The notes beneath the pieces were generated by a model. The model was not told where the DNA came from. It ran no database searches and saw only the letters and a list, made by a program, of their open reading frames with translations. A stretch of DNA of 64,000 bases from Amoebophrya sp. A120 (taxonomy: Eukaryota > Protista > Dinoflagellata). Both the position numbers and the translations under genes were made by a program. The stretch lies in assembly GCA_905178155.1 (NCBI GenBank), contig CAJINV010000025.1:102453-166452 (forward strand), read 5' to 3'. Shown here piece after piece: positions 1-58,700 of the stretch (the first letter of the stretch is position 1; each line of letters opens with the position of its first letter).

Positions 1-3000
1 TCTTGTTTAGAGTTTCTCTCGGTTGAGGTTTCTCCTATTTGAGGTCTCTCCTGGTTGAGGTTTTTCCTGTTTAGAGTTTCTCTCGGTTGAGGTTTCTCCT
101 ATTTGAGGTCTCTCCTGGTTGAGGTTTTTCCTGTTTAAGCTTTCTCCTGGCTGCGGTTTCTCCTGGTTGAGGTTTCTCCTTGCTGGGGTTTCTCCTGGTT
201 GAGGTTTCTCCCGGTTGAGGTTTCTTCTGGTTGGGGTTTCTCGTGGTTGGCGTTTCCCCTATTTGATGTTTCTCCTGGTTGAGGTTTCTCCTATTTGATT
301 TTTCTCCTGGGTGGAGTTTCTCCTGGTGGAGGTTTCTGCTGGTTGGGGTTTCCCCTGGTTGAGGTTTCTCCTGGTTGAGGTTTCTCCTGGTTAAGGTTTC
401 TCCCGGTTGGGGTTTCTCCTGGTTGCGGTTTTTCCTGGTTGGGGTTTCTCCTGGTTGAGGTTTCTCATATTTGGGGCGTCTCCTGGTTGGGGTTTCTCCT
501 TGTTGGGGTTTCTCCTGGTTGAGGTTTCTCCTGGTTGAGGTTTCCCCCTATTTGAGCTTTCTCCTGGTTGAGGTTTCTCTCTTTGGGGTTTCTCCTGCTT
601 GAGGTTTCTCCTAGCTGAGGTTTCTCATATTTGGGTCTTCTCCTGGTTGAGGTTTCTCCTGGTTGAGGTTTCTCCTGGTTGGGGTTTTTCCTGGTTGGGG
701 TTTCTCCTGTTTGAGGTTTCTCCTGGTTGAGGTTTCTCCTCTTTGGGGTTTCTCCTGGTTCAGGTTTCTCCTGGTTGGAGTTTCTCCTGGTTGAGGTTTC
801 TAATCCTGCTCGTTGGGGTTTCTCCTATTTGAGGTCTCTCCTGGTTAAAGTTTCTCCTGGTTGGGGTTTCTCCTGGTTAAGGTTTCCCCTGGTTGGAGTT
901 TCTCCTGGTTGAGGTTTCTCCTCTTTGAGGTTTCTCCTCTTTGAGGTTTCTCCTGGTTAAGGTTTCTCCTGGTTGGGATTTCTCCTGGTTGAGGTTTCTC
1001 CTGGTTGGGGTTTCTCCTGGTTGAGGTTTCTCTTCTTTGGCATTTCTCCTGGTTGCGGTTTCTCCTGGTTGGGGTTTCTCCTGGTTGGGGTTTCTCCTGG
1101 TTGAGGTTTCTCCTGTTTGAGGTCTCTCCTGGTTGAGGTTTCTCCTCTTTGGGGTTTCTCCTGGTTGGGGTTTCTCCTGCTTGAGGTTTCTCCTGGTTGG
1201 GGTTTCTCCTGGTTGAGGTTTCTCCTGGTTGGGGTTTCTCCTGGTTGGGGTTTCTCCTGGTTGAGGTTTCTCCTGGTTGGGGTTTCTCCTGGTTGGGGTT
1301 TCTCCTGGTTGAGGTTTCTCCTGGTTGGGGTTTCTCCTGGTTGGGGTTTCTCCTGGTTGAGGTTTCTCCTGGTTGGGGTTTCTCCTGGTTGGGGTTTCTC
1401 CTGGTTGAGGTTTCTCCTGGTTGGGGTTTCTCCTGGTTGGGGTTTCTCCTGGTTGAGGTTTCTCCTGGTTGGGGTTTCTCCTGGTTGGGGTTTCTCCTGG
1501 TTGAGGTTTCTCCTGGTTGGGGTTTCTCCTGGTTGAGGTTTCTCCTGGTTGGGGTTTCTCCTGGTTGGGGTTTCTCCTGGTTGAGGTTTCTCCTGGTTGG
1601 GGTTTCTCCTGGTTGGGGTTTCTCCTGGTTGAGGTTTCTCCTGGTTGAGGTTTCTCCTGGTTGGGGTTTCTCCTGGTTGAGGTTTCTCCTGGTTGGGGTT
1701 TCTCCTGGTTGGGGTTTCTCCTGGTTGAGGTTTCTCCTGGTTGGGGTTTCTCCTGGTTGGGGTTTCTCCTGGTTGAGGTTTCTCCTGGTTGGGGTTTCTC
1801 CTGGTTGGGGTTTCTCCTGGTTGAGGTTTCTCCTGGTTGGGGTTTCTCCTGGTTGGGGTTTCTCCTGGTTGAGGTTTCTCCTGGTTGGGGTTTCTCCTGG
1901 TTGGGGTTTCTCCTGGTTGAGGTTTCTCCTGGTTGGGGTTTCTCCTGGTTGGGGTTTCTCCTGGTTGAGGTTTCTCCTGGTTGGGGTTTCTCCTGGTTGG
2001 GGTTTCTCCTGGTTGAGGTTTCTCCTGGTTGGGGTTTCTCCTGGTTGGGGTTTCTCCTGGTTGAGGTTTCTCCTGGTTGGGGTTTCTCCTGGTTGGGGTT
2101 TCTCCTGGTTGAGGTTTCTCCTGGTTGGGGTTTCTCCTGGTTGGGGTTTCTCCTGGTTGAGGTTTCTCCTGGTTGGGGTTTCTCCTGGTTGGGGTTTCTC
2201 CTGGTTGAGGTTTCTCCTGGTTGGGGTTTCTCCTGGTTGGGGTTTCTCCTGGTTGAGGTTTCTCCTGGTTGAGGTTTCTCCTGGTTGGGGTTTCTCCTGG
2301 TTGAGGTTTCTCCTGGTTGGGGTTTCTCCTGGTTGGGGTTTCTCCTGGTTGGGGTTTCTCCTGGTTGGGGTTTCTCCTGGTTGGGGTTTCTCCTGGTTGG
2401 GGTTTCTCCTGGTTGGGGTTTCTCCTGGTTGGGGTTTCTCCTGGTTGGGGTTTCTCCTGGTTGGGGTTTCTCCTGGTTGAGGTTTCTCCTGGTTGGGGTT
2501 TCTCCTGGTTGGGGTTTCTCCTGGTTGAGGTTTCTCCTGGTTGGGGTTTCTCCTGGTTGGGGTTTCTCCTGGTTGGGGTTTCTCCTGGTTGAGGTTCCTC
2601 CTATTTGAGGCCTCTCCTGGTTGAGGTCTCTCTCCCCTGGTTGGGGTTTCTCCTGGTTAAGGTTTCTCCTGGTTGGGGTTTCTCCTGGTTGGGGTTTCTT
2701 CTGGTTGAGGTTTCTCCTGGTTGAGGTTTCTCGTGGTTGGGGTGTCTCCTGGTTGAGGTTTCTCCTGGTTGGAGTTTCTCCTGGTTGAGGTTTCTCCTGG
2801 TTGGGGTTTCTCCTGGTTGAGGTTTCTCATATTTGGGGTTTCTCCTGGTTGAGGTTTCTCCTGGTTGCGGTTTCTCCTTGTTGGAGTTTCTCCTGGTTGA
2901 GGTTTTTCCTGGTTGAGGTTTCTCCTCTTTGAGGTTCGTCCTCTTTGGGGTTTCTCCTGTTTGAGGTTTCTCCTGGTTGAGGTTTCTCCTGGTTGAGGTT

Positions 3001-4080
3001 TCTCCTGGTTGAGGTTTCTCCTATTTGGTGTTTCCCCTGGTTGAGGTTTCTCCTGGTTGAGGTTTCTCCTGGTTAAGGTTTCTCCTGGTTCAGGTTTCTC
3101 CTGGTTGGGGTTTGGGATTTCTCCTGGTTGGGGTCTCTCCTGGGTGAGGTTTCTCCTGGTTGAGGTTTCTCCTATTTGAGGCCCCTCCTGGTTGAGGTTT
3201 CTCCTCCTTGGGGTTTCTCCTGGTTGGGGTTTCTCCTGGTTAAGGTTTCTCCTGGTTGGAGTTTCTCCTGGTTGAGGTTTCTCCTGGTTGGGGTTTCTCC
3301 TATTTGGGGTTTTTCCTGGTTGAGGTTTCTCCTCTTTGGGGTTTCTCCTGATTGAGGTTTCTCCTGGTTGAGGTTTCTCCTGGTTGGAGTTTCCCCGGGT
3401 TGAGGTTTCTCCTGTTTGGAGTTTCTCCTGGTTGAGGTTTTTGCTATTTGAGGCTTCTCCTGGTTGGGGTTTCTCCTATTTGAGCTGTCTCCTGGTTGAG
3501 GTTTCTCCTGGTTGAGGTTTCTCCTGGTTGGGGTTTCTCCTGGTCGAGGTTTCTCCCGGCTAGAGTTTCTCCTGGTTGGGGTTTCTCCTGGTTGAGGTTT
3601 CTCCTATTTGATGTCTCTCCTGGTTGAGGTTTCTCCTATTTGGTGTTTTTCCTGGTTGAGGTTTCTCCTGGTGAAGGTTTCTCCTGGTTGGGGTTTCTCC
3701 TGGTTGAGGTTTCTCCTATTTGGGGGCTCTCCTGGTTGAGGTCTCCCCTGGTTGAGGTTTCTCCTGGTTGAGGTTTCTCCTGTTTGGGGTTTCTCCTTGC
3801 TGAGGTTTCTCCTCTTTGGGGTTTCTCCTGGTTGGGGCTTCTCCTGGTTGAGGTTTCTCCTGGTTGGGGTTTCTCCTGGTTGGGGTTTCTCCTTTTTTGG
3901 GGTTTCTCCTGGTTGGGGTTCCTCCTGATTGAGGTTTCTCCTGGTTGGGCATTCTCCTGGCTGGGGTTTCTCCTCTTTAGGTTTTCTCCTGATTGGAGTT
4001 TCTCCTGGTCGAAGCCGCCCGCCCCTGTTTGAGGTTTCTCCTGGTTGAAGCTTCTCCTGGCTGAGGTTTCTCCTGGTTGT
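1..4080. repeat. 16-bp tandem satellite (TTTCTCCTGGTTGRGG)n, homogeneous core ~1190-2590, diverged flanks; runs off window start
   Basis: Unit read directly; core mostly follows a GGGG,GGGG,GAGG variant order (48-bp period); decays into unique sequence near 4080. Confidence 0.97.
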
Positions 4081-21403: not shown

Positions 21404-21681
21404 TATGGATTGCAAAAGTGTCTGGGTCTAAAAGAGTGGAGCTTGTAATGCTGTCTGCGGATAATCATACTTCTAAAAGTAAAAATCTTTGTGTTGCATG
21501 AGCTGCAAGAGGAGACAGTTCTTGGCACGCGGAGAGGGCATTTCTCATGCGTAATTAGCATCAAGAAGCTGTAAAAAAATTATCTGTGATGCTAGCACTA
21601 GCATCACAGACCTCACGGGTCATACCAAATGTGCATGACAAGCCCCGACTCTTCCAGACCCACACACTTTTGCAGTTGATA
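21404..21681. mobile_element. introner family A, TSD tgacg
   Basis: TIRs, perfect duplication. Confidence 0.92.
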
Positions 21682-22132
21682 TGACGGGGAAGGGAGGCGC
21701 GAATTGGTGGTGGAACTGGAAAAAAGAACTCGACGAAGAAGCCCCGGTCCTACCGAAGGACTGGTTTTTCATCCCAAACAGCTGGGGATTCAACACCGCC
21801 AACGTTGCGGAGGGGGATGTGACAAAACCCGGGTTTAACTACGAAGCCGCCGGGTAACGAGCTCGTCCAGGTCGCTCCCCTGTGGATGGGCTGGAACGAG
21901 CCCGACATGTACGGCTTTTGCGTGAGCAACCCGGATGTCAAGCGGCAGTGGAAGGAGGATTGGGTACCCCCTGCAGAAGGCCAACCCCCTACGCAAGTCA
22001 ACTGCAAGGCTCCTTCCGGCCTCGGGTGGTGGAATGAGGATTTAGTAAACGACCCAACCTCGTACATGGCAGCGTGGAAACAAAACCTCAATGCTGCGAA
22101 AAACCTCGGGTACCAAACCACCTCCCCCATGA

Positions 22133-22456
22133 TATCGCGAGGAAAAAATTCCCCTCCCCATATTGAAAAGGTATGTTCCTAAAAATTTGTGATGCTGATT
22201 TGTGACCACGAATCCCGTCTCTCTTGCAAGACGGCAAATTGAAAGAATCCGCCGCCTTATGGCGGCGGTTTGTAATGCTGTTTCACCAACATGGCAGGCC
22301 TCTGCTATGCTAAGCGCCTACAACAAAACACGCCTACGCAGGCTGAGGCTTTGCCTGTAGTGCCTCACTGCAAGAAGACAGGGCTGATTTGTGTACGCAA
22401 TCCAGCAACAGAAGTTTCCGTTTCAATATGGGGAGGGGGGAGTTTTCACTTTGATA
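22133..22456. mobile_element. introner family D (aaaaatccccctccccatat), TSD catga
   Basis: TIRs, perfect duplication. Confidence 0.9.
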
Positions 22457-22786
22457 CATGATGGCGCTCCCTCTGGCTCGAGGCAAGAACGAGGGGGAGG
22501 CGCCGGGAATCGACGACAAACCAACTGGGCTACTTTGGGTGGTTGGGCCCGTTCTTGGACGCAGCGTGCAGCGCGGACTGGGATGCGTGCCCGGATTACA
22601 TCAACTTTCACTTCTACATATATGGGCTGCAACGCGGACACGAGCGGCTTGGAAGGGCGCATGGAGGACGTGAAGTTGCTGATGGAAAAGTACCCGACCA
22701 GCAAAGGGGCGATGCTCACCGAAACGGGAACTTTGCGTCTTCCTACGGACCCAAATAAACACAGCACTTGCGACGAAAAAACCCTG

Positions 22787-22825
22787 ATCGCCGGTATGGA
22801 AGCGATCTTCAAGGTGCTCAACGAT
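22787..22825 (+). repeat. array repeat copy 1 (GH128 exon sequence atcgccggtatggaagcgatcttcaaggtgctcaacgat)
   Basis: Core identical at 24174, 26440 and 28031. Confidence 0.95.
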
Positions 22826-22835
22826 TCCAAGGTGC

Positions 22836-22972
22836 TTCTCATGCAGGATAGACATGAAAGAGACCTCACAGACTCTGTCATGCTAGGTCTCGCATTCCAG
22901 ACCTCAAGGGTCATGGAAAACCTGCATGACAACTTCACACTCTTCCAGACCCAGACATTTTGGCATTTCATA
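22836..22972. mobile_element. right half of a family A introner (start of cargo 1)
   Basis: Right TIR ttccagacccagacattttggcatttcata present, left TIR absent. Confidence 0.8.
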
Positions 22973-23284
22973 GGTGACCGATGTGGGCGACATGAAGACG
23001 CTGACCGTGCCCGGGTACACCCGCGAGGCGGCGGCCAGGGAGGCGAAGCAGATCGCGAGCGCGCACCGGGTATGCACTGCAAAAGTATCGCACTCGTAGT
23101 AATTGCGTTTATGCATTACAAATCTCTTTCTCAAGGTGAACCAGCATTACAAATTTAAGTAATTTAATTTGTAATGCTGGGCTAGTTTGTAATGCAATTT
23201 ATACTAGTACGATCACGATGCTTTTGCATTGCATACCGGGGCGGTAGCTCCTGGAGTCAGTCGATCGCGAATATGAAGAAGTAA
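22973..23284 (+). pseudogene. 3' fragment of a diverged UBE2Q-like copy (cargo 1)
   Basis: VTDVGDMKTLTVPGYTREAAAREAKQIASAHRG..SQSIANMKK* matches 30613-30753; downstream DNA to 24173 matches ~30755-31450 with indels. Confidence 0.9.
23071..23235. mobile_element. introner short family S (tgcaaaagtatcgYactcgta), TSD ccggg; empty site at 30705-30709
   Basis: Filled/empty comparison between paralogous copies. Confidence 0.95.
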
Positions 23285-23700
23285 AAAACGCGGTTCGACA
23301 AGAACCTCTCGATTTGAAGGTCGTATTGAAAATGAAACAGCAACAGTCACGAATTCAAGTGACAAGAGCATCAGAAATTACTCCTCCACCACCTAAAAAA
23401 GCAACATTTCGTTTTATCTTTACGTTTACCACTCCAAGAGCAGCAAATAGCAAGCAGAAGCAAGAGCAGCAAGCTAGCAGCTCCAGAAATGACGCAACGA
23501 CTCAATCGAAACTAGTGAAAACTGGTTTATTATATAAGATTTCCACATCGACAAATCACTTCCTCTCTGCTCACGTGTAGAGACAATTGACAACAAGCTT
23601 AAGTAACTCCCATTTGTTGAAAACGTTTACATCACAGCACTGTTCTACTTAACAAACCCCCTTCGAGCAGCAGGTAGGATGAACAAAACCAACTGTTACT

Positions 23701-23953
23701 TATGGATTGCAAAAATGTCTGGGTCGGGAAGGTTGGAACTTGTAATGCTAGCTTTCCATACCTAGAAAATCTGTATTGCATAACCAACAAAAGTCGCAGC
23801 CTCTTTTGTCATGCAAAAACGCAGTTTCTCATGCGGATTGCCTATGAGAAAGCGTTTTGGGAAGTTGTCATGCCGGACTGCATTCGGAAGTGTCTTCATC
23901 ATGCACATTTTAGCATCACAAATTTCCAGACCCAGACATTTTTACATTTGATA
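23701..23953. mobile_element. family A element in non-coding DNA, TSD ttact; empty site at 31221-31225
   Basis: Filled/empty comparison. Confidence 0.93.
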
Positions 23954-24173
23954 TTACTCTGATCGCAGCGACTCACTCCCTATTCTCAAACTCAATCTTA
24001 TCCGCAATAAAGCAGGCAGATTTCGGTTTTCTACTGTGGATGAAAACCATCTTCACACAGTTTCACTTCCCGGATTATACTAGTATTCGAAGTAGATGTC
24101 TGACTTTGAACGGCCCAGTCTCGCCCCAGACTGGCTCTACAACTACTTCGTCGGCTGGTAAGGCGCAAAAAAA

Positions 24174-24215
24174 ATCGCCGGTATGGAAGCGATCTTCAAG
24201 GTGCTCAACGATCCG
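24174..24215 (+). repeat. array repeat copy 2
   Basis: 42-bp match. Confidence 0.95.
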
Positions 24216-24427
24216 GAGGTGGAGCAGAAGAGGCTGAGGAGGAGAAACCGGCAGGATCCTGCGTACCAGCAAGTCCAATTGGACGACCCGACGGTGATTG
24301 GGAGACCGGAGTTTGATGATATACTGTAAAGGAAGGGCGCCAACATCTTCCTCTTCAATTTGAAGGAGCCACGAGTCAAGAACAACACGACGACAAACGA
24401 CATGATCATCTGAAGAGGTGAAATACG

Positions 24428-24715
24428 TATCCTAAGGAAAAACGTCCCCATCCCAGAGTCAAGTTGGTAGATCTGCAACACAAATCTCCAAGTTTTGGGA
24501 TTTGTGCATGACAAGTTTCCATCTGCAGTGTAGTGGTGGTCAGTAAGGAAAGCCGCATGAGAGAGCCATTTTCTCATCCTGTTGACAGCATTACAAATGC
24601 CCAAAATAAACGGTTGGGAACAATGCCTCTCATGGAGATCCGCATTACAGATCGATTCCTGTCATTGCACATTTGCATTTACAACTCTGGCGTCGGGACG
24701 TTTTTACATAGGATG
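24428..24715. mobile_element. family B element in cargo 2, duplication decayed
   Basis: tatcctaaggaaaaacgtccc...gggacgtttttacataggatg. Confidence 0.8.
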
Positions 24716-25522
24716 CGTCGTCTACCGGTATTTATCCTCCTTGGCAAGGCTGGGCGAGGAGTACGATTTATTTCTGTAGCGCCGGGCAAAATAGAGTCTG
24801 TTTTTTTTCGAAGAAGATCAGAAAGTGCCCCCTCTGGCAAGTTGCGGAAGGTGCATCAAGGGTCTATCAGTAGATAAAAAGCCGCTTCTGCGCTGTGGAA
24901 GTATGCCAGCTGTACTTACACAGAAGCCGAATGATCGTCCGCGCGCTTATGAATACGAGAGTCACGCTCACGTTCCGAGGGCGCACTATACGATTTTTTT
25001 TTTTTTGTGCTAGTTTTTGCTTTAGCTTGAGTTGGTTTCTGATTTTGCTTTTGTCTTTTGTTCGCTGTGCGCTTTGCACAAATAAGGGCGAGAGACGCGA
25101 AAAAATAGCAGCAGGGGCAGAGTGATGGTTTCGTGAAAAACGACAGAGTTGTTGAGTGAAACTTATCTGAAAAACGTAGCTTAACCCAGCAGGTTTCCTC
25201 GATGACAAAAAGTTGATCCAGTGCTTCGTCAATCGTCGGCCATATAACTCGATGCCCAACTTCGACAGTAGATATTGTGCAACAGTATTGTCATGCTCAT
25301 GGTGTTGAGTAGCGCTACTTAGTATCTTATGCGTCCACGCCGATCACTGCATTGGTAGTTCTCCTCCCCTTTAGTAAATTTTTTTTGTACTACTCTAACT
25401 TCCTCGAGAGAAAATTGATTCTTTGTTCTAGTGAATACTTCACTCTAGAAGTTTTGCTGTTACTTATTCGAAAGATGAGGAAACGACTCTGACCCAGATC
25501 CACGACGATCAGATCTGCCGAC

Positions 25523-26439
25523 ATGTTCCGCGCCCTATTAGAACAAGTCAAAACCGCCGGGCGAGTGTGGCTGCGCCGAGGACCACCTGGCAGTGGTCTT
25601 TCGGATTCCGACTCCGAGTCGCTGTCTTCGGAAAGCGACGTCCATATCGACGAAGCCCTCGTCGTCGCACGGTGGGAGAGGGTAGGAAACCACGCGATGA
25701 AGCGAATGCGGCGCGAGCGGGTCAGCGTTCCGTCTCTGGAAGTCATCGAGGGCTGGGCAACACTCGCCGTGCGGCTTTTGAGGAGAAGCCTGATTTTGGG
25801 CGAAGATGAGAATGAAGAAGCGAAAAGTGTGGCACTTGATGCAAAAGACCGATCTGTGGTGCTTCAGCACCCAATTCACTTCAGGGACGCTACGGGTGAG
25901 CTGCTTGTGCAAGGTAACTACGCTGAAATTAGCACGTAAAAGTAATCTGGATGCTGGCCGTTTATTTGGTATGCGCAATTCTACTGCAAATTTTACAACA
26001 TCGACATTTATTTCAATTTATAGACAAAACGTAGTCGTGTTGATCGGATCACTTAACAGAAATTTCAACTTTTGAGGTTGCGGACCGGCAAACGCGTCTC
26101 CTGAGGAGTACCGAAACGAATTCCTCTACCGAGCTAAACACGCTTCGTCGCAGCCAGTGCCACAAGAGTGCTACGACATGCTGAAGAGCCCGGACCACAG
26201 CCCGTTGCCGCACGTGGATACCGACACGACAGTCCCGAATAACACGGGCGCTTTGCTTCGATATCGGGTGGTTTGCCGATTCCCGGTGCACGCACGAGGG
26301 GGACCCAACCAGCAAGCGCGCGAGCGCATCAAGGCAGACGCAAAACTGCTAAGTGCGCCAATCGACGCCCGCATCTCTTCAATCGCCGTTATGCAGGGGG
26401 ACCGCTTCACCGATCACAACGTACAGCAGGGGGCCCGGC
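25523..26439 (+). pseudogene. 5' part of an unknown gene in cargo 2, cut off by array repeat 3
   Basis: ATG ORF 25523-25939 plus a second open frame from ~26157 running into the repeat. Confidence 0.5.
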
Positions 26440-26482
26440 GATCGCCGGTATGGAAGCGATCTTCAAGGTGCTCAACGATCCG
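26440..26482 (+). repeat. array repeat copy 3
   Basis: 43-bp match. Confidence 0.95.
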
Positions 26483-27166
26483 TGTTACCGAACGATAGAA
26501 CACAGACGAGGTCCGTATTGAAGTTCAGTTTTCATTTGTTGAGATTCCCAAAAGACTGTTCGTTTTTCATGAGAAGTGTTCAGCTTCGAATTCGTTTCGC
26601 GCATGAGAAATCATGTTTCTCGTTCTTCTTTCTCATCGTGGAAAAAACAATTCTCGCTTCACAAAAAACAAAAACAGAATTTGATTTTTCTTTGCGATTC
26701 AGTGCGGAGTCACACCAGTATAAAAATAAAAAAAGAGTAAAAAAATTGAGGTATACTTACTTCAATTTTGTGGAAAATGTGTGACATTCTTGAACTCTTA
26801 CTTTTTGCTATATGGAATTTTTTTGATCGTGTGCTATTGCAAATCTTGTACAAGTTTGTTGGCTGATAGGCTGTTATGGTGAAGAGAGACTGTTCATGGT
26901 ATGAACCTGCTCTGACTGGCTTTCGATCGTGCTAGAAATCGTTTTTATGAATTCATGAACTTTGTGTACAGGAGTTTGGTCTTGAGTCACAGAGCTTTTA
27001 CTTTTATGTGTTTACTTTTCTATGATTGCAATCATGACTGTTGTGTGAAAGTTTCAATATTTTATTGTACAATTGGCCGGCAAAGACTTGTGCATAATTT
27101 CGTTCTTTTACTTTGAACTTAATTACGAAAAAACTAAATCTGTGATGCTAATTTTGCAAAATTTTT

Positions 27167-27808
27167 TTACTCTACATATGCTATCTGAATTTCGTTTGTT
27201 GACATTGCCCGCTCTAGTAATGACTCAGACTTACTTTTGGTGAGTTCGTCCGAGTAATTGAGATGCGAAGGGCAATGTAGTAGGTAGTCGACATGTCGTT
27301 CTTGCAGTGCCTCGCGCAAAACTGCCATTTCTAGCTGCAGGCGTTTCGAGCCGAGGTTGATATTGCATGCACGAGTGTGATCAATGATCGACCCGCAGTC
27401 CGTAACTAGGACCAGCGGGATGTTACGACCAAGGATCTTACTTAGAATGTTTTTGATACTAAACGCGCGGTCGACGACTTGCACAAGCATGACAGTCTCT
27501 GCCTGCAAGGTCGAAGTGCAAACGCGCCTAATGCGCTTACTACTAGGGTGGATCAGATTCGCTTTGATGGTCTCAGTGCGAATCTGTGTGTCCCGGTGGA
27601 TTTTAGGTAACACCCCGGGCTTGTGCTTTTTCAAAAAGTTTGGCATATGGGCGAACCAAATACATGACCCACCTTGCGTTTTGCACCCCTCCAGATTGTT
27701 CAGCGAGGCATCGCAAAATGCGACGATGCACAAGTTGGACAAATCCAGAGGCACAAGGCGCCACACTAGCGAAGATGTATTTTTCAAATTGCGAATAATC
27801 TTATTTAG
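27167..27808 (-). mobile_element. Ty1/copia pol fragment (RNase H), 5'-truncated, in cargo 3
   Basis: AFCDAS, RRVCTSTLQAE, VTDCGS, KRLQLEMAVLRE, NYSDELTK match the copia RNase HI motif order. Confidence 0.88.
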
Positions 27809-28030
27809 CTAGCGACCTGCACGCTTCCCCCCACGCAGGCTCCGCAGCCGGTGTCCTTGATGCACGTGGTCGGATTCAGCTGCGGGTGAGACAAGAACGC
27901 CTCGTACTGCAGGATGGAGAAGAAGGTGGTGGCCATCAGGGCGTCGTAGGTCAGCCCCGCGGCGTCCGGAGATGCGCCGCCATAGAAGGATGGGACTACT
28001 TTGCTGTTGCTGGCATTACTGGTGGTCGGT

Positions 28031-28064
28031 TATGGAAGCGATCTTCAAGGTGCTCAACGATCCG
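28031..28064 (+). repeat. array repeat copy 4; GH128 frame resumes
   Basis: 34-bp match followed by QYFVNGMRTVQYVSWF. Confidence 0.95.
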
Positions 28065-29738
28065 CAGTACTTTGTGAATGGCATGCGCACGGTGCAGTAT
28101 GTGTCCTGGTTCAACTACGACAACACCGGTGGAAGCTTCGACCTGCGGCTGATCGAGGACACCGGGGGCAACGTGCGGCCGCTCGGAAAGCGGTACGCGG
28201 AATTGTGCGAAGAACACCGCGGTGGGCTACCTGCCGGCCGGTGAGTTTTTTTTTTCTTGGTTTGTTTTCGTTTTTACGCGAATGCAAGTACGAGTTGTAC
28301 CGCAATACGTCGAGCAGGGAGGAAGATACGAGTAGACGAAGTCAAGTACACTATTAGCTTTTTTTTCAAACATGCGTCTCGCGCTTTCACTATTCGGGTT
28401 CGGAACGTATCTAGTATCATTTTAGCGCAAGAAGAGACGCGCCGTTTTAGAGTTTTTGTTTTGAAGATTTTTGCAGAGTGAGCTCGCGAAGATGCGAGAG
28501 CTACTATTCAGTTCCGGTTTTTTTAACAAGTATTTTGCACTTTTGAAAAACATTAAGCGGATGTTTATTTTTTTTTACTTCACATCACATTCAGATTCAC
28601 ATCACATTTTTTGAGTACTAAGCGACTTTTTGTTTTTTCATTCTTTCTTTCATGTTGTGCCGAGCCTTGCCCGAAGTAATCTGTAGCATCGTTGTTCCGC
28701 TTGAATGCCTATAACATTCTGATTTTCCGATAAGGTGATGGTAGAGATAAGAACCAGTACACCTACCGTATTGACCGTTTCACCTGATACTCTTTCCAAT
28801 CATCTGAATTGCCCCTTTCTATTTTTCCGCTAGATTTCCTTCTAGAGTTTGAATTTCGCGCCCCCCCCGCACTTCGAACAATGCTGTTTCGCTGGCCACA
28901 AAATTTTCGCCCCAACATCAGCAACAAGAAAACGCCCCCGTAAAACAAGAAAACAAATAATTTCAGCATCCCATGCTTGTTCACATCAGTAAAAGCAAGT
29001 GGATTATGCGGTTCGTGATTTGATGTTCGTGGAAAGAAAAGAAACCGAAAGTGATTTGTTTGGAACGAAGTTCCTCTTCGGACTGCTACTGGAACAAATG
29101 GATGTCAAAAACGTCACAAAATGGGCCGTGGGATGAGGACGATGAAATCTTCGCACCAGAATCATTAAAGATCTTCATCTTGTTGTTTAGGTTATCCGAA
29201 ATATCGATGCGAAGAACTACGAACACCGTAGCTGACACGCTTCAAGTTGTCAGCAAATATATGCTTAGCAAGTTAGTTCCTTTCAACTACAAAAGAAGAT
29301 CATCCAAATGGGCAATCAAAACTTCCATCTTCTTAGGCCGGTATACGCCAAGGGTAGTGGTTGTTCGCAAGCTCCAGCACTTTCGATTGGGTCGTATTGG
29401 AGACTGCGTAGTTAAGTTTCTTCTCTTGCTCTGATTTTCTCGGATGTTAAAAAGGAGATCTACAACAAACAGCGATGAATTCGGACTAGTAGGCATTTGT
29501 GTTTCTTTTACACTTCCGTTTGCTCGTTTACAATTGTACCGAAGAACGTGGTCTCATCCATATCTCCTCTGCCTAGTTTCGTGGTCTCAATCACACGAAA
29601 AGTTGACTGAGCAGAAGTTGGGCGCTAGGTCGTGTAAAAAGTAGTAGATCTATCACTTCTAGAAAGGTTTTCAAGGAAGTCGTTTGTCAACATCCCTCTG
29701 GTCATCTTCTTTTAAGAAACACCAACCCCAAGTAAACA

Positions 29739-30753
29739 ATGGCGAGCAAGCGCGGGGCATCCAAGGATCACGCGACGACCACCGAGTCGGAGGCAGTGGT
29801 GCCGGTTAAGAAGCAAAAGACGAACGACACCGCCGATGGTGCGCCGGCGAAGGAGGAACAGTCCACAGCCCTCGCCCCCAAGAGGGTCTTCGATCTGCCC
29901 TGGTGGGGCCGCATCAACACCGACAACAAGCCGCAGAAGTTTGTGTCGCGCATGATGGGGGAGGCGAAGAAGATCTTCATCCTGAAGGAGCATGACCCGG
30001 AGCAGAAGATGCTGATATTCGACGAACCCGTGTTGCCCGACCTGTCCCGGTGGACGTTTCTCTACAAAACCGAGTCGATCGACAAAGACAGCAAACTGCA
30101 CAAGCAGCTGAAGTCGCACAACCTCGCTGGGGTCCGGTTTGAGATCAATGTGCCGGACGAGTTTCCGATGATGCCCCCCAACCTGCGCGTCGTCCACCCG
30201 AAGCTGTCCGGCAGCTATGTGTTCTCTGGCGGCGCGATCTGCTTCGAGGCGTTGACCCCGAAGGGCTGGGTGATCACCATGACGCTGGCCTCGCTGGCCG
30301 TGGCGGTGGTGGCCTTGCTGGCGGACTCGGACCTGCCCGTATCAAATGCAAATATGTCTGGGTCTGGAAGAGCTGGAACTTGTGATGCAAACTCTGGAAC
30401 ACACAAAAACTTGTGTTGCATGAGCGCCAAAAGCTGTCCATTTCTTGGTACGCAAGTAGGAAGTTTCTCATGCGGGACAGGCATCATGAGGCGTGCTCAA
30501 GACCTGTGATGCTTTTGCCTGCATCAGACGCCATTTGCGTGATCCGAAATATGCATGACAAATCTCGCAATCTTCCAGACCCAGACGTTTTTACATTTGA
30601 TACCCCGCGCAAGTGACCGATGTGGGCGACATGAAGACGCTGACCGTGCCCGGGTACACCCGCGAGGCTGCGGCCAGGGAGGCAAAACAAATCGCGAGCG
30701 CGCACCGGGGCGGCAGTTCGTGGAGTCAGTCGATCGCGAATATGAAGAAGTAA
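29739..30753 (+). CDS. ubiquitin-conjugating enzyme E2, UBE2Q-like; 2 exons
   Basis: VPDEFPMMPPNLRVVHPKLSGSYVFSGGAICFEALTPKGW; spliced tail GYTREAA..HRGGSSW resembles the UBE2Q C-terminus. Confidence 0.88.
30340..30602. mobile_element. introner family A, TSD gcccg/ccccg
   Basis: TIRs; removal gives LPAQVTD. Confidence 0.92.
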
Positions 30754-32577
30754 AAAACGCGGTTCGACTTCGACCACCTCTCGATTGAGACGATTGGGGG
30801 ATGTGCTTCCCACAACTTACGAGAAGTAGTTGTACCTAGCATCCTCGTCCTACTTATGGTCGTATTGAAAATGAAACAGTAACAGCCAGTAATTCAAGTT
30901 ACTCCTCCTCCACCTAAAAAAGCAAGATTTCGTTTTATCATATACCACTCCAAGAGCAGCAAATACAAATAGCAAGCAGAAGCACAAGCAAGAGCAGCAA
31001 GCTAGCAGCTGCAGAAATAACGCAACGACTCAATCGAAACTAGTGAAAACTGGTTTATTATATAAGATTTCCACATCGACAAATCACTTCCTCTCTGCTC
31101 ACCAAGAGAGACAATTGACAACAAGCTTAAGTAACTCCCATTGATTTGAAAACGTTTACATCACGGCACTGTTCTCCTTAACCCACCCCCTTCAGGCAGC
31201 AGGATGAACAAAACCAACTGTTACTATGATCGCAGCGACTCACTCGTCTCTATTCTCAAACTCAATCTTATTCGCAATAAAGCAGCCAGATTTAGATTTT
31301 CTACTGTGGATGAAAACCATCTTCACACAGTTTCACTTCCCGGATTTTACTAGTATTCGAAGTAGATGTCATCTGACTTTGCAAGGCCCAGTCTCGCCCT
31401 AGACTGGCTCTACAAGAACTACTTCGTCGACTGTTGAGGCGGAAAAAAAAACGGGATGAAACGCTGTGCCAAAAAAGCAAAATAAAACAAAAACTACCGA
31501 GATTTTTTTGGAAATAAATCACCCCCATCAAAAGCCGTCGTTGGAGGTTTTTCCGGGAAAATGAAAGTCTGCGATGCGAAAAGACAAAAAACGACTTAAT
31601 TTTAACGCGCAATATTCATTATCGTATTACCTCTTCCAAAGTGAAAATGATCGTGTGATGAAAAGCTTGGTTATTTTCTTCAGCGAAGCCACGCAATTCG
31701 TGTACAGAACAGAGCCTATGGATGTTCCAGCGGTCTTTTGTGTGTCGATCTGTTTGCAGTGATGGAAAAATCTCGTGGTCGCCCTGGAGCTGCAGGTGCG
31801 TGGCTTCAGTTTCGAGTCCGAGTTGGTGGGCAGATATACGCCCATCGCTCGATCCTTCCAAGTCCAAAAAACTTACGATGGTGTCTTCAGGCCTCATCTG
31901 GGTGGAATGATAAAAAAATCTTGAGAGTACTAGATCATCAACTCAGTGTGCTGCGCACGGAATCTTCAATGCCATCAAGCAGGATTTGTTGACGGGGCCG
32001 TTTTAGATGATCCCTACAGTGTTTCTATGGTGCCTGCTTGAGACGCTGCTAAAAGAACGGAGGATGAAGATCATGTGGTTTGATTCAAAAATAAGAATTG
32101 CAGGAGCAGGCCATCATGGTAAAAAGAAGTACCGCATTTCCTTATCCTTTTCCTTTGTTGTGTTGCGAAGCGATCGCTTTTTTTTACGACGAAAATCAAT
32201 ACAATTTTCTCGTTGAAGATTCCATCAGTTCCATTTCCAAGCGCTCTCCTCTTTCCTATCCAGGCGACAGTGACACCATCACTATATGAACAAACTACGA
32301 TCTGGGTAGTCGTAGTTCTTGCAGTCTAGGTCGGCAGATGTCCTCGTGTAGTGCGTAGGCCAGCAGGAAATTGGTTTAGCTCCATGCCCATTCTTTAGTA
32401 AGCTTCTTGCTAGATGACACAAGGTCGAAGGCGCCCGAACAAGCTCCCCGCCCGCTACCACAGAAATCGTTGAGTAACTGGTATTATTGAAGAGAGAACC
32501 TCGTCATGATCCTTGCTTAATAGTGCGAGACGTGGTAAGTAGAAAAGCTGCTGAGTGCTGACACAAGAAAACTAAAA

Positions 32578-55736: not shown

Positions 55737-58700
55737 ATGATGAAGACAGCGGGCGAGAAGAAGCAGCAGCAGCAGGCCTACCGCATCTACTTCCTTCGCC
55801 ATGCGGAGAGCGCCAATAATGCGCGGGCGGAGGGCGAGACAAGGAACTGCGACCCCGGACTGACGGCTCTGGGAGAGCAGCAGCAGGAGGCCCTCGCCCG
55901 CGCTTTGCTGCAGAATAATGTAGAAGTCAGATCTGGCAGTGGCAGTGGTGCCGTGAAGGAGCAGTCGACGGGTTTGTTCCCCTTCTCCCGCATTCTCGTG
56001 TCGCCCATGACGCGGACGCTCCGGACCTATCAAATGCAAATATGTCTGGGTCTGATAGAAGTTTGCTGCAACTTGTGATGCGGATTCTAGAATAGGCAGA
56101 AAGAAAGACTTGTATTGCAGGGGGGCCAAAAGCTGCCCGTTTCTTGCTACTTACGCACATAGAGACTTTCTCATGCAGGACAGGCATCTTCAGGAAGCCT
56201 GCGCAAAACCTGTAATGCTTCTGCATGTTGCACTAGAGAGAGAGACCAGTTATCTGTGACCGAAAAGATGCATGACAAACTCCTGAACCTGCAGCACCCA
56301 TCCAGCCCCAGACATTTTTGCAATGCATAGAACCGCGAGCAGCCTGATCCGCCACACTGTCGAACACGCAGGCGGGCCTGAAGAACCCTATGACGTTAAT
56401 AATTTCCATTTCCTTTCCCGAGAAGGCAGTATAGTATAGTAACAATAGGCGTGGGCCTGCGGGCCTAAATTCCGGTGGGTTGGTCGGTCGGTTGGTTGGT
56501 TTTGGACAGACGACATGTGACCGAACCCGCTGCATTGTGTTTTGTGTTTTTCTGAGATTCATCCACTACTACTGTTGAAACTACCTACCTACCCACCTAC
56601 CTGGCGTCCTTTCCTATGCATTGTAGTACCGTGATCGCACCGACCCACCTACCTACCTATCCCTTTCCACCCAGAGACAGCTGGTCACGCCTACCGGCCT
56701 ACCCACCCACCAGCCTGGTTGGTGGGTGGGGCGAGGGAGCGTGCGCTGCCTATTGGCCACGCCTACCGACCTACCCACCCACCTCGCTGGTGGGTGGGTG
56801 GGGCCGGCGAGGGAGTGCGCGCTGCCTATTGGCCACACCTACCGACCTACCCACCCACCTTGCTGGTGGGTGGGTGGGGCCGGCGAGGGAGTGCGCGCTG
56901 CCTATTGGCCACACCTACCGACCTACCCACCCACCTTGCTGGTGGGTGGGTGGGGCCGGCGAGGGAGTGCGCGCTGCCTATTGGCCACACCTACCGAAGC
57001 TGAAGATGAAGACACTGATCAGCATGACAATGATGGGGGGGGGGGGGGCCTCGCGGCCGTGTCTCTAATTCCTCGCGCTAGTCCCTGGCCCTAATCCCTA
57101 TCTCTATAGAGTGATTATCTCTAATAATTCCCGATCTCCCGCTCTCCCTTTCATCTTTCTTATCCTGAATATCTCTAGATATCTATATCTGATCCCTGTC
57201 GCCCGGATCCTCGGCTCCGAGGATCCCTGCTTTCGGCCGACGCGAAAACAGGGATCCTGAGCTCCGAGGATCCCTGTTTTCGGCTGACGCGAAAACAGGG
57301 ATCCAACCGCCACCATCAGGTCGGAGGATCCCTGTTGTTGTGGGCGCGAAAACAGGGATCCTCGTGCGTGATGTTTAGGACAGACAGATTCTCGGTGGGT
57401 ATGACTCTAAGTGTTTATGCGTGACAAACTTCATCTTCATTACGCGGCTTTTTATGCATGACAAAATCAAACAAGAAGCATACTCATGCATGACAAATTC
57501 AACCACGCGTGACGCTTGCGCATGACAGATTCAATATTGTCTGTGGAGATCACGCACAGTAATAGAAATGTCGGCAGAGGTCTTGCTTGGGATATTGTCG
57601 GCGCCGGGCCTCGACGACGCGCCCGAGCGCTTCGTTGATTGTGTCCGCGTTTCGAATATCGAAGCAGGCGGACTTCGCGTCGATCGCAATCTGCGGATTC
57701 AAACGGAGATACACGCAGAGCCGCCACCCAAAGTACGCGTCTAGGATCATCCGCTCCCAGTAGTCCAAATCCCACGACACCTCCTCGGGCTCGTATTGCA
57801 GCCCGAGCTTTTTCAGTTCCTCCTTCTTCATGAACTCCCTAATGCTGGCCGCCCCAAGTTTTGTTTTTGTTGCGATTCCGCACTGTGTTATGCAACGCAA
57901 AAATATCGCGCTCGTGGCTGTGGAAACGCAAGCGCGAAGAGGAAGAAAGGGCACGTGAGAAGGCATAGGGGGACGCCGGCCTTGTCACGTGTTTCTTTTC
58001 TCCAAGCTTGCCAGCCGCCCTGCGGAATATTTTTGCATGGCGTACGCATGTCCGCATGCAGTTGGTACAAATAATCCACGCGCACACCCTTATGGCTGTT
58101 AACCAGCCAGACAGCCGGACCGGGGGAGCCTTCGCCGGGGTCTTTTTTACTTTTGTTTCCACTGGGGTCGAGGAGCACGCGCTCGGGGACGCAAACGTGC
58201 GTCCCTGAATCGTTTACGCAGTAGTTCGGATAGACGTACGTCCTGCATTTCTTGTCGTTGCATCTCCGCAAGACAATTTCGAAGTTCTCCACACCGCGCG
58301 CGCCCCATGCTTCTACTTTTACTGCCTTGTCCCGCACGTGCGTGGCGCCTCCACACAAGGGGCACACGACGCCTCCCTCCTCGGGTTCTTTCTTTGGCCG
58401 CCCGCGCCGCCGCGTCCTTCCCGCCTCTTGTTCCATTTTTTTTGCGAATTTACTTGACCGCGCACTCGACCACGAAAGACCTCTACGAAATTCTTACAAA
58501 ATAAGGCGGAGCTGCTGAATTCTGACTATAGGAACTGCTGGGGTCGCTGCTGTTTGAAAAAAATACTTTTTTGGTTGCTGGCGTTATTCTGGTAGAAAGG
58601 GAAATGGGTGGGTGGATTGGAATTGATCTCAGCCTCCGCGCGGGGAATTTTGGTGTGGGTAGCTAGGCTTCGTGGGGACGCCTTTTTTCTCGTGTAGCTC

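Follow-up and report, generated by a model that had tools for sequence, protein, structure and literature searches.

Direct repeats that flank unrelated DNA are left by several processes of quite different origin. In the NHEJ/MMEJ model of new introns in Daphnia, Drosophila and Aspergillus, DNA fragments are captured at staggered double-strand breaks, and the insert, single and short, comes to lie in an exon between direct repeats of a few bp of the target, with short junction microhomology and an AG|GT in the repeat that could in principle permit splicing (PMC3020277). In Arabidopsis, transposed non-transposon genes are flanked by direct repeats longer than 30 bp that occur once at the empty target; the movement is DNA-based, the fragments keep introns and flanks, the parent site is often a tandem array, the donor is not always retained, and the repeats are often imperfect or chimeric, the proposed mechanism being a circle plus homology (PMC2869330). 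A bacterial counterpart, insertion with long target duplication, was described in Helicobacter (Nobusato et al. 2000, as cited in PMC2869330). Experimentally, adjacent single-strand breaks yield duplications of the stretch between them (Schiml et al. 2016, as cited in PMC8153287; paired nickases, PMC11081867), while replicative template switching (FoSTeS/MMBIR, multi-invasion SDSA, polymerase-theta templated insertions) joins chains of segments from nearby and distant loci but leaves donors intact, and polymerase-theta inserts are normally tens of bp. Finally, long target duplications are made by site-specific non-LTR elements of the CRE/SLACS type, which carry RT and endonuclease genes and have one defined target sequence and one defined element, and repeat-cargo-repeat architectures are familiar from prokaryotic integron cassette arrays and CRISPR spacer acquisition, which rely on a conserved repeat or recombination site plus a linked integrase or Cas1.

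Here, we describe an array of three kb-sized inserts stacked at one exonic point of a GH128-like gene of Amoebophrya sp. A120, in a 64,000-nt window (contig CAJINV010000025.1, positions 102,453 to 166,452; all window coordinates below are counted from its first letter). A sequence-only reading had proposed that the cargos are separated by copies of the target of about 40 bp, and this observation is confirmed, with the cargo coordinates as given there. An exact 31-nt core occurs four times on the + strand, at 22795, 24182, 26449 and 28031, whereas 0 of 100 shuffles gave any match, and with up to 3 mismatches the core is found nowhere else in the 115.5-Mb genome. The four copies are identical over 115 compared nt. 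Collapse of the array restores the gene: in an uninterrupted GH128 homologue, P0007 (312 aa, PF11790, E 5e-16), the upstream piece aligns to residues 176-248 and the downstream piece to residues 239-297, so that the two outer copies cover the same residues and the repeat is a true target duplication. The host gene nevertheless carries a frameshift, confirmed in reads, and is a pseudogene. The features of the array, and of the other loci discussed below, are collected in the table, in which R denotes the target repeat and C2, C4, C5 and C25 denote sequences of this genome.

Table. Features of the array and coordinates of five further long-repeat inserts
Feature	Coordinates	Strand	Description	Supporting observations
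GH128-like host gene, upstream part	21681-22825	+	Exons interrupted by introner-type elements; +1 frameshift in the ATATAT run near 22620-22630	Weak PF11790 hit on the first exon; pieces align to P0007 in two different frames; annotated protein P0010 starts in the wrong frame
R1	22787-22825	+	Target copy 1, 39 nt, continuous with the upstream exon	Aligns to P0007 residues 236-248
Cargo 1	22826-24173	+	11-nt filler resembling an internal stretch of R (22826-22836); half an introner (to 22972); last exon of an E2-like paralogue (22974-23070 and 23235-23287); downstream DNA; two introner insertions absent from the paralogue (23071-23234, 23701-23953); ends in an A8 run	7.1% substitutions plus indels against window 30603-31452; no second copy of E2 exon 1 in the genome
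R2	24174-24215	+	Target copy 2, 42 nt	Run X3 contig 24047-24203 crosses cargo 1 to R2
Cargo 2	24216-26440	+	3' end of a gene (to 24329); family-B element (24428-24714); spacer; 5' part of the next gene with its intron; last 66 nt (26375-26440) unique in the genome, beginning with a 12/13 match to the start of R	Block 25669-26374 about 99% identical to C25:79-81 kb, the rest 88-92% identical; 4-nt microhomology TCCG at R2 to cargo 2
R3	26441-26482	+	Target copy 3, 42 nt, or 43 with the preceding G	Run X3 contig 26453-27324 crosses R3 to cargo 3
Cargo 3	26483-28030	+	Patchwork of three pieces, A, B and C-D	No microhomology at R3 to A; 4 nt, CGGT, at D to R4
Cargo 3, piece A	26483-26714		First 232 nt, from its terminus, of a dispersed repeat	99.6-100% identical to a copy on C2
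Cargo 3, piece B	26715-27812		Unique in the genome; 206-aa minus-strand ORF (27167-27787), possibly the C-terminal part of a copia-type pol	
Cargo 3, piece C-D	27813-28030	-	Gene fragment	C 97% identical to C4:7414136-7414281; D unique
R4 and downstream gene end	28031-28244	+	R4 (28031-28064, 34 nt, then native sequence) and the last 70 codons of the GH128-like gene up to the TGA stop	Aligns to P0007 residues 239-297
Second event in the window	56403-59465	+	Perfect 40-bp direct repeat (56403-56442 and 59426-59465) flanking a 2983-bp patchwork insert	Insert starts exactly at the terminus of a hAT-like element family whose normal target duplication is 8 bp
C4 array	C4:7412265..		Three copies of 34-52 nt	
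C4 insert	C4:10304561..		34-bp repeat	
C2 insert	C2:1162954..		39-bp repeat with 2 mismatches	
C5 array	C5:8585279..		47-61-nt unit four to five times, including cargo-less tandem copies	

The cargos are mosaics of 2-4 sources. Cargo 1 is a diverged copy of the 3' part of the neighbouring E2-like gene plus its downstream DNA, and cargo 2 spans the junction of two adjoining genes of a tandem family 40-45 kb upstream; their homologues lie 7.5 kb and 45 kb away on the same contig. For cargo 3, a label of copia RNase H had been proposed from the sequence, but this has only weak support, in that the ORF returned no Pfam or PDB match and only an Atlas lead to RVT_2 clusters. As the sequence-only reading had stated, the cargos share no termini, keep introns and intergenic DNA, and lack an integrase; no RT, integrase or endonuclease domain was found in or beside them.

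Sequencing reads support the architecture, although the order of the cargos rests on the assembly alone. DNA run X1 covers every bin at single-copy depth, with unique cargo contigs at 21-34x against 25-28x for the flanks, and its contigs end at 22815 and start at 28035, exactly where a k=31 graph must branch. Contigs built from reads stop or start exactly 30 nt inside the repeat. In run X3, from another study and probably RNA, three junctions (cargo 1 to R2, R3 to cargo 3 and cargo 3 to R4) are crossed by exactly 30 nt; the records examined did not include R1 to cargo 1, R2 to cargo 2 or cargo 2 to R3.

The site is not special, as we verified five more long-repeat inserts (repeats of 34-61 bp) in this genome, two of which are also stacked. 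The repeats of the different loci are unrelated in sequence and share no motif, hairpin or fold. Stacking thus occurs in 3 of the 6 loci, a frequency that chance re-hitting cannot give. Some cargo edges fall exactly on repeat-family termini, namely a hAT-like end in the second event of the window and an end like that of piece A in two loci, as is expected if pre-existing DNA ends or linear extrachromosomal DNA are used. The repeat edges are also asymmetric: in the GH128 array, right edges fall at repeat positions 39, 42 and 42 and left edges at 1, 0 and 6-9, and in the C4 array right edges are 31 and 34 and left edges 1 and -18. Right edges are therefore nearly fixed and left edges variable, although this asymmetry rests on only five junction pairs. 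Additionally, junctions have 0-4 nt of microhomology, comprising, besides those in the table, 1 nt at cargo 1 to R2, and two junction-adjacent stretches, the 11-nt filler and the start of the 66-nt tail, resemble the repeat itself, albeit with only weak significance (p about 0.02 each).

The earlier interpretation, repeated site-specific capture of genomic fragments with a long target duplication each time, is only partly supported. The inserts are real insertions of kb-sized genomic fragments into one exonic point, each with a long duplication of the target, but site-specificity is not supported, since other loci carry the same architecture with unrelated repeats and no shared motif or fold; the site is therefore not recognised by sequence. 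Three independent hits on one 40-bp target by a non-specific process are in turn implausible, so that stacking is more likely intrinsic to one repair episode or a self-promoting lesion. Of the two mechanisms that had been suggested, CRE/SLACS-type retrotransposition failed its tests: the cargos keep introns, there is no poly(A), the A8 at the end of cargo 1 being genomic in the paralogue, and no RT or endonuclease is present. The other, staggered-break repair, is the one favoured by the junctions. The accompanying statement that no described eukaryotic system matches is too strong, given the partial precedents (PMC3020277, PMC2869330).

We therefore favour, with a probability of about 0.45, a reading in which the array is the scar of error-prone repair of a chromosome break rather than the product of a site-specific capture system. 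In this view, the exon was opened by two nearby strand breaks (or an equivalent blocked end), so that the two ends overlapped by about 40 nt. Instead of re-annealing, the left 3' end, which ends at or near ...GATCCG, would have paired by 0-4 nt of microhomology with another DNA, whether a free fragment, excised transposon or retro-element DNA, or a nearby or homologous chromosome stretch, and would have been extended over 1-2 kb, sometimes switching template on the way. The extended end would then have come off and paired near the tip of the other end's tail, and filling in of that tail would have re-created the 40-nt overlap; when the new end again failed to be sealed at the same point, the cycle would have repeated. 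Such a process would give alternating repeats and cargos with identical repeats, nearly fixed right edges and variable left edges. The target duplication, its perfection, the patchwork cargos, the short microhomologies and the recurrence of the architecture in this genome are direct results of the analysis, whereas the overlapping-end lesion, the iterative single episode and the nature of the templates are inferences, with no direct evidence for a two-nick lesion or for a single episode. Because the repeats are identical while cargo 1 differs from its only homologue by 7% plus indels and most of cargo 2 by 8-12%, the repeats are young and were probably made together, and the proximity of the homologues of cargos 1 and 2 is as in local template use. 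However, the scarcity of donors counts against this reading. Although the repeats look recent, cargo 1 is only 93% identical to its only homologue, the left part of cargo 2 is 88-92% identical, and B, D and the 66-nt tail have no other copy at all, while the single-copy depth over the cargos indicates that donors are not hidden by assembly collapse. A copy-and-paste template-switch event should leave donors, and the templates must therefore have been lost, excised, extrachromosomal, or from a diverged homologue or strain, none of which we could show.

The alternatives appear less likely. Serial acquisition by a dedicated enzyme (an integrase, casposase-like enzyme or LINE-type endonuclease/RT) that makes cuts staggered by 30-70 nt, inserts arbitrary DNA or RNA copies one cargo per event, and prefers existing repeats as targets so that arrays grow, would account for one nearly fixed and one variable edge, as with a first nick plus a loosely placed second nick, for cargo sizes in a narrow range of 0.3-3 kb, and for the recurrence and frequent stacking; the species also has non-LTR and LTR elements (PMC12130899). 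This reading is nonetheless unlikely, given the lack of a shared motif or fold, of any candidate enzyme domain in or beside the cargos and of poly(A), and the retention of introns and spacers; moreover, the C4 array cannot be built by growth at one end only, and an integrase does not explain the cargo-less tandem copies in the C5 array. While serial capture by a site-specific enzyme is thus not supported, a dedicated sequence-independent pathway is not excluded. Somewhat less likely still is circle integration, in which pieces excised from tandem gene arrays by intrachromosomal recombination re-insert by short-homology recombination or at a staggered break, leaving the shared stretch on both sides, as in the Arabidopsis model (PMC2869330). 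Cargo 2 does span the junction of two units of a tandem family, its tail carries the 12/13 match to the start of R, and donors are absent as expected after excision, but recombination with an imperfect match would give hybrid rather than perfect repeats, cargos 1 and 3 show no R-like stretch, no remnant of an E2 paralogue lacking its 3' end exists, and neither the fixed right edge nor the cargo-less tandem copies are explained.

Doubtful, too, is the idea that the repeats are functional, with repeat-bounded inserts removed from RNA as unconventional introns, or from DNA, so that selection keeps the repeats perfect while the cargos drift. In its favour, R contains CAAG|GT, so that any repeat-to-repeat interval is a GT...AG unit whose removal restores the frame, the repeats are perfect although the cargos are diverged, and more than 60% of introns in this species are non-canonical and often bounded by short direct repeats (PMC7789003). 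However, no selection should act on a frameshifted host gene, the public annotation reads from R1 straight into cargo 1, run X3 contains unspliced cargo/repeat junctions, two RNA runs from 2026 have no reads on the exons, and the C2 locus has a decayed repeat (37/39); splicing-out of the array is thus unsupported. An assembly or topology artefact, with mis-ordered or gap-filled cargos or separate R-plus-cargo molecules beside an intact gene, is similarly improbable. The published assembly keeps Illumina ALLPATHS-LG scaffolds with GapCloser, ordered on Nanopore contigs (PMC7789003), a k=31 graph cannot order paths through a 34-43-nt repeat, three of the six junctions were not among the records examined, and some assembly letters in cargo 2 (25693, 25810-25817, 26223) are not seen in run X1. 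Yet junction k-mers exist in reads of two studies and stop exactly as the assembly predicts, R occurs nowhere else, the same architecture is seen at several loci, and cargo depth equal to that of the flanks excludes alternative alleles in a haploid culture.

Set against the described systems, the array shares with fragment capture at staggered breaks (PMC3020277) an unrelated exonic insert between target repeats, short microhomology and an AG|GT within the repeat, but its repeats are 34-43 bp (up to 61 bp at the other loci) and its inserts are kb-sized patchworks stacked three deep, with no splicing shown. With the transposed Arabidopsis genes (PMC2869330) it shares DNA-based movement, fragments that keep introns and flanks, a repeat that occurs once at the empty target, a parent site that is often a tandem array and a donor that is not always retained, but stacking with interspersed target copies is not described there, and a circle plus homology does not predict a fixed edge. 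Adjacent single-strand breaks explain a duplication whose length equals the overlap of the two ends (tens of bp), as well as cargo-less tandem copies as in the C5 locus; however, those duplications are experimental, form no arrays and mostly lack kb-sized cargo, and paired nicks at this locus would need a natural source. With replicative template switching, the array has in common chains of segments from nearby and distant loci, 0-4 nt microhomology, short flank-derived fillers and a return upstream of the departure point that duplicates the flank, but most cargo here has no near-identical donor. With CRE/SLACS-type elements it shares the long target duplication, whereas its cargos are unrelated, keep their introns and have no RT, and the targets are unrelated. 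The resemblance to integron and CRISPR arrays lies in the visual architecture and, for CRISPR, in a repeat duplication that arises from staggered integration; here, each locus has its own repeat, a copy of the local target, and no linked enzyme.

An identical 31-nt core occurs exactly four times in the window, always on the + strand and never in 100 shuffles, and a search of the 115.5-Mb genome allowing up to three mismatches found it nowhere else, which rules out the possibility, named beforehand as one that would undo the observation, that the 40-mer is simply a dispersed repeat. The sequence-only reading had described four copies of this core at one exonic site of a GH128 gene, with kb-sized cargos between them, and that observation holds. 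Its inference, repeated site-specific capture of genomic fragments with a long target duplication each time, is only partly supported, in that the long duplications of the target are real while specificity for the site is not borne out by comparison with other loci. The extended copies (R1 to R4) and the other features discussed here are collected in the table below.

Positions of the repeat copies, cargo landmarks and related loci (window coordinates unless a contig, C, or a fetched locus, L, is named)
Feature	Position	Description
Tandem array	1-4000	16-bp unit (GGTTTCTCCTGGTTGA-like), filling the first 4 kb of the window
Frame change in the GH128-like exon	22610-22640	ATATAT run, change near 22625; the homologue reads ...HFYVMGC... 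across it
R1	22787-22825 (+)	39 nt
R2	24174-24215 (+)	42 nt
Near-identical block of cargo 2	25669-26374	about 99% identical to C25:79-81 kb (L016), a paralogue 45 kb upstream; 88-92% elsewhere
R3	26441-26482 (+)	42 nt, or 43 with the preceding G
Stretch with four variant letters in run X3	27865-27912	letters match the C4 paralogue (C4:7414136-7414281)
R4	28031-28064 (+)	34 nt, running on into native sequence
Homologue of cargo 1	30603-31452	3' part of the neighbouring E2-like gene and downstream DNA
Second event in the window	56403/59426	perfect 40-bp direct repeat flanking a 2983-bp patchwork insert
hAT-like non-autonomous family	56443-56997 and L039-L042	about 1.9 kb, roughly 80-bp terminal inverted repeats, internal ~200-bp tandem repeats, 8-bp target duplications
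Adjacent ORFs in the 56-kb insert	57553-58436 (-)	182 and 138 aa, possibly two exons of one gene
Stacked array on C4	C4:7412265-7415496 (L027), positions 159-2777	three copies of a 34-52-nt stretch separating 1.0- and 1.5-kb inserts; right edges 31 and 34, left edges 1 and -18
Single insert on C4	C4:10304561..	34-bp repeat around 1416 bp
Single insert on C2	C2:1162954..	39-bp repeat with two mismatches around 1358 bp
Array on C5	C5:8585279-8588367 (L034), positions 1547-2737	47-61-nt unit four to five times, two inserts (633 and 313 bp) and directly tandem, cargo-less copies; a single N lies 42 nt upstream, at 1505
The related single inserts of about 1.4 kb on C2 and C4	L026 1462-2897 and L029 1443-2926	follow a 39-bp repeat (2 mismatches) and a 34-bp repeat, respectively
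Dna2 homologue	C7:3116568-3118045	present in this genome

A library-wide search with the 70 codons downstream of the array identified homologues, one of which, P0007 (312 aa), carries the GH128 catalytic core (PF11790, E 5e-16). The piece ending in R1 aligns to P0007 residues 176-248 and the piece starting in R4 to residues 239-297, with R1 and R4 themselves falling on residues 236/239-248; both repeats cover the same ten residues, so the ancestral exon was continuous and the repeat is a duplication of a sequence present once in the uninterrupted target. The exons of the window, searched one by one, give only a weak PF11790 hit (E 0.028), and the GH128 assignment therefore rests mainly on the homologue. 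The gene is probably dead, and probably a recent pseudogene, because the upstream exon needs a frame change in the ATATAT run to follow the homologue and both DNA and RNA contigs agree with the assembly at that point. The public annotation (P0010, 164 aa) starts in the wrong frame and reads from R1 straight into cargo 1.

Support from sequencing reads was assessed in several runs. Run X1 behaves as genomic DNA, with introner bins at 10^3-10^4 times the unique depth; it covers all 30 bins, and unique cargo contigs lie at 21-34x against 25-28x for the flanking exons, so the cargos are single-copy and are not alternative alleles. X1 contigs end at 22815 and start at 28035, exactly where a k=31 graph must branch if the repeat has several contexts. 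Run X3, from another study, is most likely RNA rather than a second DNA sample, because its introner bins are only 4-50 times the unique depth, and its gap over cargo 2 is therefore not evidence of a polymorphism. X3 contigs cross three of the six junctions, cargo 1/R2 (24047-24203), R3/cargo 3 (26453-27324) and cargo 3/R4 (27822-28060), each stopping exactly 30 nt into the repeat, and the order of the cargos rests on the assembly alone, which was built from Illumina scaffolds ordered on Nanopore contigs (PMC7789003). The X3 contig that crosses from cargo 3 into R4 carries the four letters of the C4 paralogue where X1 matches the assembly, which could reflect a chimeric contig, a variant, or conversion. 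Two 2026 RNA runs have no reads on the exons.

The three cargos share nothing but dispersed repeats and have no terminal inverted repeats. Cargo 1 is a copy of the 3' part of the neighbouring E2-like gene and about 0.9 kb of DNA downstream of it, from which it differs by 7.1% substitutions, several indels and two extra introner insertions. Transitions and transversions are balanced (25 against 28), which led us to reject RIP-like or deaminase-like mutation. No second copy of E2 exon 1 exists in the genome, nor does an E2 paralogue lacking its 3' end, and thus no scar of a cut-and-paste event was found. Cargo 2 spans the 3' end of one gene, the spacer and the 5' part of the next gene, with an intron, of a tandem family 40-45 kb upstream. 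Its identity to the closest unit is mosaic, which looks like gene conversion or a mosaic origin; at 25693, 25810-25817 and 26223, however, run X1 shows only the paralogue's letters at double depth, so that the assembly letters there are unsupported by that run. The last 66 nt of cargo 2 match nothing else in the genome. Cargo 3 comprises three pieces: A, 232 nt from the terminus of a dispersed repeat and 99.6-100% identical to a copy on C2; B, 1098 nt, unique in the genome and holding a 206-aa ORF that, on weak evidence, may be the C-terminal part of a copia-type pol; and C-D, a 218-nt gene fragment in which C is 97% identical to a copy on C4 and D is unique. Donor searches for each cargo and sub-piece thus returned mostly diverged homologues or none, near-identical copies being confined to piece A and block 25669-26374, and because cargo depth is single-copy, donors hidden by assembly collapse are rejected. 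In contrast to the cargos, the 115 nt of repeat that can be compared show no difference, although at even 4.5% divergence about five differences would be expected.

The junctions show little or no microhomology. R2/cargo 2 shares TCCG, cargo 3/R4 shares CGGT, cargo 1/R2 shares one A and R3/cargo 3 shares nothing. Between R1 and the introner half of cargo 1 lie 11 nt that are absent from other copies of that introner and match an internal stretch of R in 10 of 11 positions, and the unique tail of cargo 2 begins with a 12/13 match to the start of R; each match has p about 0.02 against shuffles, so these flank-like stretches are suggestive only. The right edges of the repeats are nearly constant (positions 39, 42, 42), while the left edges vary (1, 0, 6-9).

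The GH128 site is not special. A scan of the window for exact direct repeats with unrelated flanks found a second case, at 56403/59426, whose insert starts exactly at the terminus of a hAT-like family; as intact copies of that family make 8-bp duplications, the family was rejected as the source of the long ones. The first of the two adjacent ORFs in this insert has an AT-hook-like GRPKK and cysteine pairs, but neither has a Pfam match. Four more loci were found among those fetched as homologues of cargo 3, and because of this route the overall frequency, which rests on 171 kb, is biased; the unbiased figure is two sites in 64 kb. In the stacked array on C4, the three repeat copies contain the 5' UTR and start codon of a minus-strand gene; one cargo is that gene's body, ending in an AAATAAATAAATAAA tail, and the other holds the 'A-like' repeat (the dispersed repeat that supplies piece A) joined to a fragment of the same gene family as piece C-D of cargo 3. 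The C2 insert and the second C4 insert (in L026 and L029), which are related, both start at the same terminus of the 'A-like' repeat (TGTG(A/T)CTCC...), right after the repeat copy, but end at non-homologous points. In cargo 3 the same terminus lies 450 bp from the possible copia-type pol end, in the same orientation, so the repeat may be an LTR, although Pfam gave no support. The cargos of these loci likewise have only 74-93% homologues elsewhere. The repeats of the six loci are unrelated, sharing no motif on inspection and no fold or attC-like hairpin, and Pfam searches of all cargo ORFs and of the ORFs of the 56-kb, C2 and C4 inserts returned no mobility domains, including transposase, RT or integrase.

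The targets are unrelated in sequence, and three independent hits on one 40-bp stretch, together with stacking at half of the loci, cannot be chance; stacking must belong to the process. The picture that fits best, to which we assign a probability of about 0.45, is repair of a break whose ends overlap by tens of nucleotides. In this view, one end is extended on, or joined to, other DNA, returns by microhomology near the tip of the other end's tail, and filling in of that tail re-creates the overlap, with the cycle repeating when sealing fails at the same point. Such a process would account for the identical repeats, a fixed departure edge and a variable return edge, patchwork cargos, short microhomology, flank-like fillers and cargo-less tandem copies, while cargo edges on transposon or repeat termini suggest that pre-existing DNA ends or linear extrachromosomal DNA take part. 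The duplication and its perfection, the mosaic cargos, the junctions and the recurrence of the architecture are read directly from the sequence, whereas the overlapping-end lesion, its repeated cycles and the nature of the templates are inferred. The main weakness is the lack of donors, which a recent copy-and-paste event should leave; either the templates were excised or extrachromosomal, or they came from a diverged homologue or strain (the homologues of cargos 1 and 2 lie only 7.5 and 45 kb away), or the events are old and the repeats are kept alike. Simple loss of the flap nuclease Dna2 was rejected as a cause at the gene-presence level, as a homologue is present.

Other readings appear less likely. 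A dedicated long-stagger integrase, or non-LTR retrotransposition in trans of the CRE/SLACS-like or L1-like kind, would explain the fixed edge and the narrow cargo sizes, yet it remains unlikely in the absence of any motif, any enzyme domain in or beside the cargos, poly(A) or intron loss: the cargos keep introners, an intron and spacers, the only A-run, at the end of cargo 1, is encoded in the genomic paralogue, and repeat sequences and edges differ between loci. Circle integration as proposed for Arabidopsis transposed genes (PMC2869330), which we regard as somewhat more doubtful still, fits the tandem-array origin of cargo 2 and the missing donors, but does not fit perfect repeats or the edge pattern. 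That the repeats are functional is likewise improbable: R contains CAAG|GT, so any repeat-to-repeat interval is a GT...AG unit whose removal would restore the frame, but the host gene is frameshifted, the annotation reads through, and unspliced junctions are present in X3, although a k=31 contig cannot show the collapsed form and the two 2026 RNA runs are without reads on the exons. An assembly or topology artefact, the least likely of these readings, is disfavoured by the read k-mers and depths, though only long reads can exclude it. The evidence also does not exclude, although we consider it unlikely, that Amoebophrya A120 has a dedicated, sequence-independent DNA-insertion pathway, either a new class of long-duplication mobile DNA or a host capture system, that places 0.3-3 kb DNA pieces into the chromosome with 30-70 bp anchored target duplications and preferentially re-uses an existing repeat. 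Such a pathway would build cassette-like arrays genome-wide and could be a major source of this lineage's gene fragments and unconventional introns.

Amoebophrya genomes are known for invasive, largely unexplained intron-like elements; more than 60% of introns are non-canonical, many bounded by short direct repeats (PMC7789003), and some introner families move by unknown mechanisms (PMC12130899). Two papers on this species' introners describe 3-5-nt repeats and diverse transposon-derived introners, not the present architecture, and a recurrent scar of kb-sized inserts bounded by perfect 30-60 bp target copies, often stacked, points to a mutational process that has not been described for this species in the papers searched. 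That process moves gene fragments, breaks genes, and could seed new introns, because any repeat containing AG|GT makes the insert spliceable. If it is a break-repair signature, it gives a readable natural record of how a dinoflagellate repairs breaks; if an enzyme is behind it, it would be a new kind of eukaryotic DNA capture.

Among known systems, replicative template switching (MMBIR/FoSTeS) inserts copies whose donors remain in the genome at near identity, which is not the case for most of the cargo here, and cut-and-paste transposons or introners carry terminal inverted repeats and a family-typical short target duplication, whereas the cargos here have no terminal inverted repeats and the local hAT-like family makes 8-bp duplications. 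Integron and CRISPR-type arrays use the same repeat or recombination site throughout, with a structured site and a linked integrase or Cas1, whereas each array here repeats its own local target, without a shared hairpin and without an integrase domain in the cargos. Capture of fragments at staggered breaks with flanking direct repeats is an accepted model for new introns (PMC3020277), and the heterogeneous inserts, the junctions and the lack of target specificity across the six loci accord with it. Adjacent nicks are known to give duplications of the stretch between them (Schiml et al. 2016, cited in PMC8153287), and long flanking repeats around DNA-transposed genes are described in Arabidopsis (PMC2869330). 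New with respect to these precedents are the length and perfection of the repeats, the kb-sized patchwork cargos, the stacking with an anchored edge, and the recurrence across one genome.
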